DNA of 62,017 bases, counting the filler, from Choristocarpus tenellus KU-1152 (lineage: Eukaryota > Protista > Phaeophyceae), in the NCBI GenBank assembly GCA_964200185.2. It is 10 parts of 10 records of this genome, joined end to end, with 100 filler letters (N's around TTAATTAATTAA, not from the genome) between each part and the next. Parts side by side here need not be neighbours in the genome. Positions count along the whole stretch, not along the records: positions 40,882 to 59,320 come from CAXNAD020000552.1; 9 more parts are not named here. One strand, given 5' to 3'. Position 1 is the first letter of the stretch, and each line of letters begins with the position of its first letter. The position numbers and the translations under genes are program-made. Shown here piece by piece: positions 48,101 to 52,509 of the stretch. The notes beneath the pieces were generated by a model. That model searched no databases. It was not told the DNA's origin and was given only the letters and a program-made list of their open reading frames with translations.

Positions 48101-51100
48101 CATCTTTTTTAGATACAATTTTGTATCTTGTAGAGAGGCAGTCGAAGTGTGAACAATATGTGTAGCATTGTATTCAAATGTACTTGACAACCAAGTTGCT
48201 TTAAAACTCACTTTTTCCACCAGTCTATCTCTGTGGCTGAATTGTTATTTTCTTCTTAAGAATTAATTTCTATACTACTTGCTTTTCTACCTCTTCATGC
48301 CCAGTATTACTTAAAAACGCAAGTTCGTTCGTTTTCACAGTTGCTCATGATTTCATATAGTCGCAGGTTCAGAGTTGTACTTGACGCGCTTTGTTGTCAT
48401 GTTTTGAGGAACTTTGTTGATTTGCGAAGATGAGATACAACTCTCACAGTTGTATTCTCTGGTGTCACATTATGTCATTACTCTGGAAATCATTCAGTCG
48501 GGTACCATCACCACCTCGGAGGCTGGACACTGCATCAAGACAATGAAGTTCAGTGTAAGCCCAGTTGTACGTGTGGCTGTGGAGCCCAAGAACTCTTCTG
48601 ACTTGCCCAAGCTTGTTGAGGGCATGAAGCGTCTTTCCAAGTCAGACCCAATGGTTCTCTGTTATACTGAGGAATCTGGCGAACATATCATTGCTGGATG
48701 TGGTGAGGTAAGTGCAAACATCACATAAATTTAATGTCTTTTGTCAACTTCTCAGCGGAGATGAAGTGTATTACTTTTTGGTATCCTTACTTTTTAAGCT
48801 CTGTGTAAATATTTTGCTGATATCACTCACTGGTTGGACTCCCATGTTTGCAGAATGATACCAATATCATGTTTTAGTATATTTTTTACTAATTGTTACA
48901 TTTTTTGCCTGAAATGCCAGCCCGTACTTCCTAAGGAACAAAATAAAAGGACAGAGCGAAGTCCGATGACCTTAGGTGTTGACGCTAGGCGAGAATAAAC
49001 CAGCGGGCATTGGTGGAACTCGAGGGTTAATAACTCTCTCCAGGGCAGTAACATGAGGTTTTTGCTAAAATGTAATGCCTCTGTGCCTGCCTGCTCTCGA
49101 GATCCCTTTGCGCGTGTAGAGTGCTGTTCCGACATGTCATCTTGTACACAGATGCGTTAATCCACGCTTTAGTAGTGCCGTATTACCACTTGAATCCCAC
49201 CACAGTCTTGTGATTATCCTAGGGGCCTCCAAAAGAGAGGCCTTGCAGATTATCGATATGGACAAAGGTAAAGGCATTTGAGGAATGTGTGTAGAGGTTA
49301 CTGTGTGCGGGATTAGCATGAACAGTGCGTACGTACATTATATAGTAATTGTTTTTAACATAAATTAAATCATGATACCAACCTGCATCCTTCCATTCAT
49401 AGTCATCTTTTAGTGTGTGTTTTTTCAATATAACAGCTGTTTTTAAGGTGAGATTTTGGTTAAAGTGAGGTGGAAGTTGCTCTATTTATAAGGCTTCCTT
49501 TTAAGGAACGGTGAAAATCTTTATCAGCAATGAATGCACCAAAAATGTAGGATTACTTTGTGGATCATGGTAGGGCATGTTGTCCCTTCAGTCTTGATAT
49601 TTTTTCTTGACACTGAATGTCAATCCCATCTCTTTCATTGTTTCTTATTTTCTGTGAAAGCTTCACTTAGAGATTTGCCTTAAGGATCTCCAGGAGGACT
49701 TCATGGGCACAGAGGTGAAAATCTCTGATCCTGTCGTCTCATACCGTGAGACTGTCTCTGCTGAATCTAGCCAGCAGTGTCTATCAAAATCTCCAAACAA
49801 GCACAACCGTCTCTATCTTTCTGCAAGCCCGCTTGAGAGTGGTGTCCCTGAAGATGTTGAAGAGGGCAGGCTTAACCCCCGCGATGATGCCAAGGTAAGA
49901 AGATATGGAGTACTTATCACGGGCTGAATATTTAATGTTCAAATATTCTCTTGATGTCATTTGAAGTTTGACAGTGAGTTGCATGTGATGTGTTAGGTAG
50001 CAAAGGATTTATCATTTCACGATTTTCTGTTCAATTTATTAATAGTGGAGTACGTATGAACAATTATTTTCTTTTTTGCTAATTTTGCTGATGAATAATT
50101 ACTTGGCCAAGCAACTTGCAATTTCCACCCTACTGGTTTCAGTTTTCATGGAGCTGTCCCTTTACATTGGTCATTTGTAATACAGACCCGTGCACGCTAC
50201 CTAGCTGATACACACGGATGGGATGTGAGTGAGGCGCGTAAAATCTGGGCTTTTGGACCGGAAGGAACAGGAACCAACATCTTCGTCGATGTGACCAAGG
50301 GTGTAAACTACCTCAATGAAATCAAGGAGTCTGTTGTGGGAGGTTTCAACTGGGCTATGAATGAGGGTCCCATGACTGAGGAGAAGGTGTGAGAGACTAT
50401 CTAGTAAAAATCATCTCTGGGTTATGCTTGGTGCTTGCTTTAGATGTAACATGTGTTTATATCCAATTGAGTTAAAAGTGTAATAGAAGTGGAGTCAAAT
50501 TTTTGTCGTCTACCTGATAAATGTTCAATGTTTTGTTTCTTATTCAAAACAATTCAAGTCAGCAGCATGAAGAGTGATTTACTCCCAAAGTTTCTCTTAT
50601 TTGAACTACCGCTAGGTACGTGGCGTGAGGTTCAACTTGCTTGATGTGGTACTGCACGCAGATGCTATCCACCGTGGTATGGGTCAGATTATGCCTACCT
50701 CCCGGCGTGTAGTTTACGCTTCAATGCTCACTGCGTCACCAATTCTACTGGAGCCAGTGTACCTCTGTGATATCCAGTGCCCACAGGTAAAGTACATTGT
50801 TCTTCAATGATTTGTCAATTTCTTCTAGAAACACTCCAAAAATTTTATAGGGTGGTTTTGGTACAATATAAAAGTAAATATCTTGTTTTCACATGTACTG
50901 TCTCCAAATATCTTTTTGTGTATGTTTCAATAAAAGTTTTTTATATTTATCATTTTTTATGTTGGATTTAGACTAGTGATCATGTTTCCGAAATTGAACT
51001 GTGATTCAGTTGTCTTGTTTTTGTTACAATCTGAGTGTTGATATATATTTTGTTAAATTGATGCCAGTTCGTACTTCCTGAGGAACAAAATAAAAGGGCA

Positions 51101-52509
51101 GAGCGAAGTCCAATGGCCTCAGGTGTTGATGCTCGGCAAGATAAAACAAATGGGTGTTTGTCGATTTTGGGGGTCAAAACTCTCTCTAGGTCAGTTAGAA
51201 TCGGTGAATGTTGAAAAAAGAGTAAGCATTACCCCACTATCTGTCCGCCCTTAGAGTCCATTCACACGTGAAGAGCACTGTTTCCCCTTACGTTCTCTTA
51301 CTGAGAAGCGCTTGTTCGTGTTTAGTTGGTGCTCATTCGTTTTCTTGAACCTGCCTTAACCAGCAACAGTCCTTCATGGTATCATAACAATAACTATTTG
51401 GGATAATTGATGGTAAGGTGAAATGGATGTGGGAGAGGGTGTAAGTAACCACATAAAGGAACAGTGTGGGCATTGTCTTCAAACATACACATAGTTTATT
51501 ATTGCCCTGGCAGTCTACCATAATTATGTAAGACTTGGTTTAGACATAATTTTTTTTCGATATATAGAGTTTTCAACTATTTGCCATACAGAAAACTATT
51601 CTAGGCAGAACAAAGCTGATTAATAAGCTAAGAAAAAAGCATTTGTTCTATAACTTTCTCTTTTTCTGACTTAGTTGAACATTTGTCTAGTCTGCCTCAC
51701 GGTTTTATCATGATCATGCTGATCATCTAACCATTATGAAAATTATATACCAATAGTTAAATATTGCGTTTTATAAGTTCTGTGCTGACATTTATGGAAA
51801 ATGTTCCATCACAGGATGCTATGGGTGGATGCTATGGTGTGCTGACCCGCCGTCGTGGGCACGTGTTTGCTGAGGAGCAGCGTCCAGGAACCCCAATGGT
51901 AGGTTTGCTCAACTCCCTGTTTCAAGAACTTGTAAATTACCCGTAGGGCAACATGTGTGGATGTCATGGTTCTGAATGTTCCATTTTAATGTAATGTAAT
52001 AAATTAAAGGTAAAATTGGTATGTGCATGTTTATTTATCAGTCCTGTCAATCACTGTCACGACCTTGTCCATTTGATTTCTTTTCAAAATTCTAGACTTT
52101 TCTTTTCTTTTAATTTTTGTTCCAATATCTCAGGTTCAACTGAAGGCGTACCTTCCTGTTATGGAGTCATTCGGCTTCACTGCAGACCTTCGGTCGCACA
52201 CCGGTGGAAAGGCATTCCCACAGTGTGTGTTTGACCATTGGCAGGCAAGATTAATATAAAGCACACACGTTTGCTCTTTGATTGGTGTTTGTTTTGGAGG
52301 TGGACACTTTTTTTTTCGTATGTTAACATCTGCTGGTATTGATTCAACTACTTAAGTCAATCTTCTTTCCTCCTCGTTTTTTTCAGGAGATGGGTGGCGA
52401 TCCGACAGAAGTGGGGAGCAAGGCGTACCAGGTTGTGAAGGATGTACGGAAGAGGAAGGGTCTGTCAGAGGACATCCCACCCCTTGACCGCTACCTTGAC
52501 CGCCTCTAG
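42189..52509 (+). CDS. EEF2: Eukaryotic translation elongation factor 2, complete, 17 coding exons (~879 aa)
   Basis: Exons read by eye: 42189-42191, 42507-42767, 43151-43342, 43544-43678, 44402-44527, 46142-46306, 46702-46860, 47014-47222, 47515-47694, 47922-47997, 48498-48707, 49661-49894, 50186-50386, 50616-50786, 51815-51898, 52134-52244, 52387-52509 (2640 nt, in frame). Motifs [34 protein letters not shown], diphthamide loop HADAIHRG. All introns GT-AG except the last (GC-AG). Confidence 0.98.
44961..45072 (+). mobile_element. MITE family A right half in eEF2 intron 5
   Basis: CCTAACAAACACGATAGCCAAAATTACATC...CCCTCTAAGATTCTTTGACTC. Confidence 0.85.
48915..49207 (+). ncRNA. Candidate long H/ACA-like snoRNA, copy 1 (eEF2 intron 11)
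   Basis: Hairpin GCCAGC..CCTAAGG/CCTTAGG..GCTAGGC with internal loop CGTACT/GTTGA; H box AGAATA at 48992-48997, 14 nt from the pocket; multibranched second domain; ACA at 49202-49204. Paralog at 51062-51371 shows compensatory changes. Confidence 0.68.
51062..51371 (+). ncRNA. Candidate long H/ACA-like snoRNA, copy 2 (eEF2 intron 14)
   Basis: Same fold as copy 1 with CCTGAGG/CCTCAGG stem, pocket TTCGTACT/GTTGA, H box AGATAA at 51139-51144 (14-nt spacing), ACA at 51366-51368. Confidence 0.68.

Follow-up and report, generated by a model that had tools for sequence, protein, structure and literature searches.

A three-domain RNA fold maintained in two diverged sense-strand elements within introns of the eEF2 gene of Choristocarpus tenellus

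Two introns of the eEF2 gene of the brown alga Choristocarpus tenellus KU-1152 carry, on their sense strand, two diverged copies (A and B) of an element of some 270–300 nt whose three-domain RNA fold has been kept in both copies by selection since their duplication. The window analysed is a stretch of 62,017 nucleotides (nt), ten parts of assembly GCA_964200185.2 joined end to end with filler, and all positions count along it. The piece at 40882–59320 (18.4 kb, CAXNAD020000552.1) contains the intron-rich eEF2 gene on the + strand at approximately 42465–52502. The agreement between the folds of A and B is far beyond chance and strand-specific, and the first hairpin, the linker and one 15-nt bulge have kept an almost unchanged sequence. 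We consider it probable that both copies are functional structured RNAs of the sense strand. The two copies and their host introns are as follows.

48708–49660, + strand: host intron A of eEF2, 953 nt, GT...AG, phase 0
50788–51814, + strand: host intron B of eEF2, 1027 nt, GT...AG, phase 0
48915–49207, + strand: copy A, entire, inside host intron A, sense strand
51062–51371, + strand: copy B, entire, inside host intron B, sense strand

A repeat search returns a single 117-nt direct repeat (48914–49030 vs 51061–51177, 79% identity, spacing 2147), and the MAFFT alignment carries clear homology between the copies on to about 49178 in A and 51332 in B. Covariance models of the 5′ hairpin (R1) and of the two domains that follow it (R2) score copy A at 117 and 199 bits and copy B at 119 and 208 bits, respectively, and find no further match on either strand of 40882–59320. 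The elements are islands of GC content 0.45–0.48 within introns of 0.28–0.36, and the host introns are the two longest in this part of the gene, where other introns measure ~140–500 nt. The exon ends of both introns were set by blastn against the exons of relatives together with the GT/AG rule. At the DNA level, the eEF2 exons are ~80% identical to contigs of related organisms, and the matching products of these relatives contain GTP_EFTU, EFG_III, EFG_IV and EFG_C domains and carry the JGI name elongation factor 2.

RNAalifold folds the aligned copies into a 77-nt 5′ hairpin (hairpin 1), a bulged hairpin of ~115 nt (domain 2) and a Y-shaped domain (domain 3). The parts of the two copies, including a candidate H box located by direct reading or by a program that enumerates H/ACA units, are:

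48915–48991, + strand: hairpin 1 of copy A, consensus fold
51062–51138, + strand: hairpin 1 of copy B, consensus fold
48992–48997, + strand: H-box-like ANANNA of copy A, AGAAUA, direct reading and enumerator
51139–51144, + strand: H-box-like ANANNA of copy B, AGAUAA, enumerator
49003–49115, + strand: domain 2 of copy A, long irregular hairpin with a 15-nt 5′ bulge at 49028–49042
51150–51269, + strand: domain 2 of copy B, bulge at 51175–51188, apical loop with an 8-nt insertion relative to A
49121–49178, + strand: domain 3 of copy A, Y-shaped, an outer 6-bp stem around two small hairpins
51275–51332, + strand: domain 3 of copy B, consensus fold
49179–49207, + strand: tail of copy A, poorly conserved, ACA triplet at 49202–49204
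51333–51371, + strand: tail of copy B, ACA triplet at 51366–51368

The consensus fold comprises 67 pairs, of which 10 differ between the copies on both sides and 18 on one side; all of these stay paired, and none is broken. In a control in which the 3′ partners were slid by 1–3 columns, 0–3 double changes and 34–47% pairing are obtained. At aligned columns, CCTAAGG/CCTTAGG of copy A is replaced by CCTGAGG/CCTCAGG in copy B (an A-U to G-C double change), CATCT/AGATG by TTCTC/GAGAA, the 9-bp stem CTCGAGGGT/GCTCTCGAG by TTTGGGGGT/GCCCTTAGA, and GGAC/GTCC by GGGC/GTCC, which contains a G·U wobble. G·U occurs in 22 of the 134 paired cells, each of which would be an A·C mismatch on the opposite strand. 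When compared to alignments with columns shuffled inside conservation classes, the alifold energy of the core has a z-score of −7.0 for the + strand, against −0.8 for the − strand; the corresponding values are −4.5 and −0.8 for hairpin 1 taken alone, and −7.7 and −0.5 for domains 2 and 3 alone. The RNA strand is thus the sense strand of eEF2.

Because the consensus fold is derived from the same two sequences that it describes, the argument relies on two tests that are less prone to this bias, the column shuffles and a pair-retention test. In the latter, the minimum free energy (MFE) structure of A alone was mapped onto B via a structure-blind alignment, which avoids the selection bias of alifold. 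Seventeen of 43 changed pairs are broken, compared to 28.4 ± 3.3 expected when substitutions are re-placed at random, and no trial out of 2000 did as well (P < 0.0005).

The divergence of the copies is uneven between parts. Hairpin 1 is 87% identical in A and B and the remaining core 57% (Fisher p = 1e-6), a pattern of functional RNA unlike the neutral decay of a duplicate. Hairpin 1 contains one double and three single compensating changes and is kept in both copies. In the lower stem of domain 2, 11 of 19 pairs have changed, all with compensation (5 double, 6 single); the CU-rich bulge next to it is identical at 12 of 15 positions, and the apical loop at 4 of 14, with an 8-nt indel. Stem arms that vary freely beside fixed loops suggest that the stems serve as a scaffold.

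An earlier note on this DNA had described diverged same-strand paralogs in two introns of eEF2, with pairing conserved over sequence and wobbles that work only on the + strand. The repeat search, the alignment, the assignment of the host gene from exons and product domains, and the four pairings quoted above, which are those given in the note, bear this out. Its further statements that the copies occur nowhere else in the window and lack terminal inverted repeats (TIRs) and target site duplications (TSDs) agree with the model search of the piece and with the inspection of three candidate boundary sets, at which neither TIR nor TSD was found. The ANANNA after hairpin 1 and the downstream ACAGTC (49202–07 in A, 51366–71 in B), which it also listed, are present in both copies.

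Hairpin 1 is laid out like an H/ACA guide hairpin. In copy A, a basal stem (48915–20/48985–91) is followed by two pocket strands (48921–29 and 48977–84) and an upper stem (48930–36/48970–76), above which are an A-rich 12-nt internal loop, an apical stem (48949–52/48961–64) and an 8-nt loop. The basal stem has six pairs and one bulge, the pocket 9 + 8 nt, and the upper stem 7 bp, one of them with the A-U to G-C double change. In each copy, the distance from the upper stem down to the ANANNA is exactly 15 nt, though the letters of the box differ; H/ACA RNAs are expected to have their H box in the hinge, 14–16 nt below the top of the pocket. The modelled fold supports an assignment to the H/ACA guide type for hairpin 1, the 5′ module, and for no other part. 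From its pocket, a target of the form UCAACA-U-N-AAGUACG is predicted.

Tentatively, we favour the view that A and B give rise to a stable, trans-acting, intron-derived RNA that is restricted to this lineage and has an H/ACA-like 5′ module. In its favour, one highly expressed translation gene holds both paralogs, on the same strand and in two of its introns, an arrangement that is usual for isoforms of small nucleolar RNAs (snoRNAs). The copies would be paralogous genes for a protein-bound, intron-encoded non-coding RNA of about 265–295 nt, transcribed within the eEF2 pre-mRNA. After splicing, the intron would be debranched and trimmed back to the ribonucleoprotein (RNP), as happens with intronic snoRNAs. 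Hairpin 1 and the ANANNA would form an H/ACA-type module that binds the Cbf5/dyskerin–Nop10–Nhp2–Gar1 core, with the uridine of the predicted target placed in the pocket, and domains 2 and 3 would replace the canonical second hairpin as a lineage-specific scaffold. That the particle is a true H/ACA RNP is doubtful.

A number of results weigh against this reading. Clear homology between the copies is lost ahead of their ACA triplets (49202 in A, 51366 in B), and neither the enumerator nor the aligned copies reveal an ACA-abutting helix common to both. In copy A, GGUGG/CCACC could close a 3′ domain next to the ACA, and the matching columns of B pair at four of five positions only; the best ACA-abutting stem of copy B is a different, small local hairpin. 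The conserved 3′ part of both copies contains no two-stranded second pocket, the bulge of domain 2 being one-sided. A set of 117 eukaryotic large subunit (LSU) ribosomal DNA (rDNA) contigs from metagenomes (336 kb, mostly the 5′ part of the LSU) contains no recurrent canonical target of the guide, with match counts equal to those of shuffled guides, and 9-mer complementarity to ribosomal RNA (rRNA) likewise equals that of shuffled controls. The only rRNA match common to both copies, between the bulge and AGAGAGUUA in LSU rRNA, is not significant. The enumerator also reports other, spurious H-type units nearby, which makes H-type geometry alone weak evidence; the same holds for the box alone, as A-rich sequence easily yields ANANNA. 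Covariation rests on two sequences, too few for a proper phylogenetic test, and the folding energies of the single sequences are ordinary (z = −1.3 and +0.1), so that the signal is one of fold conservation and not of fold stability. In a permissive scan of the whole piece with the Rfam 15 families, among them snoRNAs, SRP, MRP/P, 7SK, U snRNAs, ribozymes and riboswitches, none matches the elements at E ≤ 10 except for a 13.8-bit HOTTIP_2 overlap that has no meaning, and the element is absent from the eEF2 loci of eight relatives (blastn, R1 and R2).

The early end of homology, the missing common helix and 3′ pocket, and the lack of a conserved target in the eukaryotic contigs leave membership in the H/ACA family as a whole unproven; no pocket-bearing 3′ hairpin ending at the ACA is shared by the two copies. 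The earlier note had proposed an unusually long H/ACA-like RNA; the guide geometry of hairpin 1 and the ANANNA 15 nt below its upper stem support it, and the 3′ half of that proposal is not supported. Its remark that no family could be recognised is in line with the Rfam scan, which it had suggested.

The eight loci were found by a search with an eEF2 exon, which returned fragments at 87–98% protein identity; they are those with readable DNA, a ninth locus having none. Their introns do not align with those of the Choristocarpus gene, and the intron matching host intron A measures ~100–400 nt. At the site of host intron B (50787|51815), two loci have no intron (L001, 12066–12069; L004, 9491–9494) and two have one of ~190 nt (L005, 10049–10233; L007, 2744–2945), compared to 1027 nt here. 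The relatives are distant: synonymous sites look saturated. The A/B paralogs have diverged less from each other, so the element may simply have arisen after that split. A gathering-threshold Rfam scan of six of the relatives' loci found nothing, and a scan of JGI metagenomes for a 24-mer that is invariant in hairpin 1 gave no exact match. Open reading frames (ORFs) across the element have no Pfam domain and no protein relatives; for the minus-strand ORF that crosses it, the search covered 5.8 billion proteins.

Two observations on the relatives stand apart from the element. L006 (1730–2125) and L008 (888–1268) are close enough to be aligned with each other, at ~80%, over the whole of the intron that corresponds to host intron A; this intron contains C-box-like and D-box-like strings (GAGAUGA, CUGAUG, CUGA), which might mark an ordinary C/D snoRNA. 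In L001, a region upstream of eEF2 (3817–4035) has a weak match to the hAT-transposase dimerisation domain (PF05699).

Canonical H/ACA snoRNAs and small Cajal body-specific RNAs resemble the element in their location on the sense strand of introns of a translation-machinery gene, in having paralogs in different introns, and in their 5′ hairpin, in which a basal stem, a two-stranded pocket and an upper stem are followed by an ANANNA 15 nt below the pocket. They are built as hairpin–H–hairpin–ACA and are about 130–150 nt long, whereas the element is twice that length and continues past the H box as a long bulged hairpin and a Y domain instead of one pocket-bearing hairpin. Furthermore, its ACA abuts no conserved stem, and neither a target nor an Rfam family was found for it.

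U17/E1/snR30 is reportedly an over-long H/ACA snoRNA that acts through loop motifs and not through pseudouridylation. In yeasts, additional internal hairpins can separate its H box from the 3′ hairpin, in vertebrates several copies can occupy different introns of one host gene, and its m1 (AUAUUCCUA) and m2 (AAACCAU) motifs are located in the loop of the 3′ hairpin next to the ACA. The element is similarly over-long, with copies in different introns of one gene. Unlike U17, it does not carry m1 and m2 at homologous places in both copies (by eye), and the Rfam U17/snR30 models are unmatched; an AAACCAG after the H box occurs in copy A only. AluACA RNAs are said to be intron-encoded H/ACA-type RNAs of ~300 nt whose hairpins are oversized and which have no evident role as guides. 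Intron encoding, length and origin from duplicated sequence are alike, but the AluACA hairpin ends directly at the ACA and comes from a high-copy short interspersed element (SINE), and here no SINE features and no extra copies are seen.

The H/AGA guides of trypanosomatids and Euglena are single, stand-alone hairpins of ~70 nt. Both copies have an AGA after hairpin 1 at the right distance from the pocket, so hairpin 1 could work as a one-hairpin guide. In contrast to those guides, ~190 nt of co-conserved structure lie beyond hairpin 1, and the organism does not seem to belong to the Euglenozoa. That an H/ACA module can be fused to domains of another kind has a precedent in vertebrate telomerase RNA, and the element likewise joins an H/ACA-like unit to other structured domains. 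However, the telomerase RNA has a complete two-hairpin unit at its 3′ end, whereas the H/ACA-like part is one 5′ hairpin here, and no telomere template is seen.

Other classes were inspected and set aside. The aligned copies show by eye no conserved C box (RUGAUGA) or D box (CUGA) at either end, which rejects a box C/D snoRNA; a hammerhead is rejected by the lack of a core by eye and by unmatched Rfam hammerhead models. No telomerase template, K-turn or Sm site was seen by eye in the copies, and an upstream TATA is not homologous between them. Likenesses to the sarcin–ricin loop, to helix 8 of the signal recognition particle RNA and to an 18S segment were judged to be due to chance.

The CU-rich bulge of domain 2 has a second feature. 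In both copies it ends in a CU-run followed by YAG|G, a good 3′ splice-site motif (CUCUCUCCAG|G at 49042|43 in A and CUCUCUCUAG|G at 51188|89 in B), and a 5′ splice-site-like motif is located downstream of the element in each intron:

49247–49293, + strand: downstream block of copy A, weak homology, AAG|GUAAAG at 49268|49269
51401–51443, + strand: downstream block of copy B, AUG|GUAAGG at 51412|51413

The block begins at a 69-nt offset from domain 3 in both copies (local alignment P = 0.07 vs shuffles). As the 5′ motif is placed in a weakly homologous block at an equal offset, the duplicated unit may be ~380 nt long. Also past the ACAGUC, 14 nt beyond that of copy A, there is a perfect GC-rich hairpin at 49221–49246 (GGGGCCUC, 7-nt loop, GAGGCCUU) with no counterpart at copy B.

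The motif pair leads to a different explanation, in which A and B are cis-acting structured intronic modules set around a cassette (‘poison’) exon, either cryptic or regulated: access to the splice sites would depend on the fold, and inclusion would lead to a premature stop in the eEF2 mRNA. Each intron has one matched pair at homologous places, which the earlier note does not list, with 226 nt between the 3′ and 5′ motifs in A and 224 nt in B. A motif scan finds no other motif of either kind in intron B and one extra of each in intron A, and the motifs resemble the real splice sites of this eEF2 gene. If the segment between them were included in the eEF2 frame, translation would stop after 39 codons (A) or at codon 3 (B), and conservation is higher in the bulge and in the downstream block than around them. 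We nevertheless find this explanation rather improbable. It would be unusual for a regulatory exon to have been copied into another intron of its own gene, and the best conserved part, hairpin 1, is located upstream of the putative exon, whose body changes by compensation instead of being conserved in sequence. Moreover, the downstream homology is marginal, and relatives have nothing similar. The motif pair may also bear on the processing of the RNA. A combined possibility, which we regard as unlikely, is an undescribed, lineage-restricted class of intron-encoded RNA in which one H/ACA-type guide hairpin is fused to a non-H/ACA scaffold of long bulged hairpin and Y domain, and the conserved bulge doubles as a 3′ splice-site mimic, so that the structure of the RNA or its precursor couples eEF2 splicing to RNP production or to host-gene dosage.

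The copies could also derive from two insertions of a mobile or retroposed structured RNA (SINE-like, a snoRNA retrogene or non-autonomous in some other way). The compensatory differences would then have arisen in active source genes of different subfamilies, and the intronic copies would have no function of their own. Structured retroposon RNAs do show compensatory changes between subfamilies, as in Alu. The element is restricted to its lineage and is absent from the orthologous introns of all eight relatives, some of which lack one of the host introns altogether; it occupies the longest introns in this part of the gene, and the piece holds a real dispersed repeat elsewhere (44958–45072 vs 56690–56798). 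Against such an origin, neither copy has a TSD, TIR, A-tail, tRNA-like head or RNA polymerase III terminator, and the Rfam scan gives no 5S or 7SL match; there are just two copies in 18.4 kb, both sense and both in one gene; and the searches of proteins and metagenomes returned no relatives of a translated ORF and no copy of the 24-mer. Neutral decay should also have blurred both the pairing, in which no consensus pair is broken, and the regional differences in divergence. An insertion origin is improbable in our estimate; if it were the case, RNA-level selection would be visible in a mobile element, a far more ordinary finding. Domain 2 by itself, a hairpin of ~115 nt with an imperfect duplex of ~23 nt in its lower stem, might be taken for a microRNA (miRNA) or small interfering RNA precursor transcribed together with eEF2. 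Most miRNA loci of the brown alga Ectocarpus are intronic and on the host strand (PMC4513859), and the long imperfect hairpin on the sense strand of an intron is similar. The conservation pattern is the reverse of that of miRNAs: paralogs keep the mature arm within a ~21-nt duplex free of large bulges, but here the duplex arms are the most variable part and the 15-nt asymmetric bulge adjoins them. This candidate, which leaves hairpin 1 and domain 3 unexplained, was rejected as very unlikely. Finally, a neutral segmental duplication between the introns with structure due to chance would be in keeping with the small number of sequences and their ordinary MFE z-scores. It is hardly credible in the face of the one-strand consensus-fold z-score, the pair-retention result and the uneven identity between parts.

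If expressed, the favoured intron-derived RNA would add to the structured non-coding RNAs a family that has no counterpart in Rfam, in a lineage with barely charted small nucleolar and Cajal-body RNAs, and would show an H/ACA-type hairpin combined with foreign domains. The matched splice-site-like motifs within a conserved fold offer a testable link between the production of a snoRNA-like RNA and the control of a core translation factor.

Some further features of the piece were recorded. An eEF2 exon (43151–43300, + strand) encodes an insertion of ~40 residues, rich in Ala, Glu and Ser, just ahead of a conserved motif; we know of no such insertion in animal, plant or yeast eEF2. The opposite-strand neighbour gene encodes an AAA+ ATPase and is represented by ORFs at 57075–57323 (−), which matches AAA_lid_3 with E = 9e-16, and 58358–58675 (−), which has no Pfam match. 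The dispersed repeat mentioned above is direct and ~115 nt long, with 81–91% identity over four contiguous blocks; one copy (44958–45072) is in an upstream eEF2 intron and the other (56690–56798) beyond the gene. In all probability it is a genuine fragment of a mobile element and has no connection with the intronic RNA pair.

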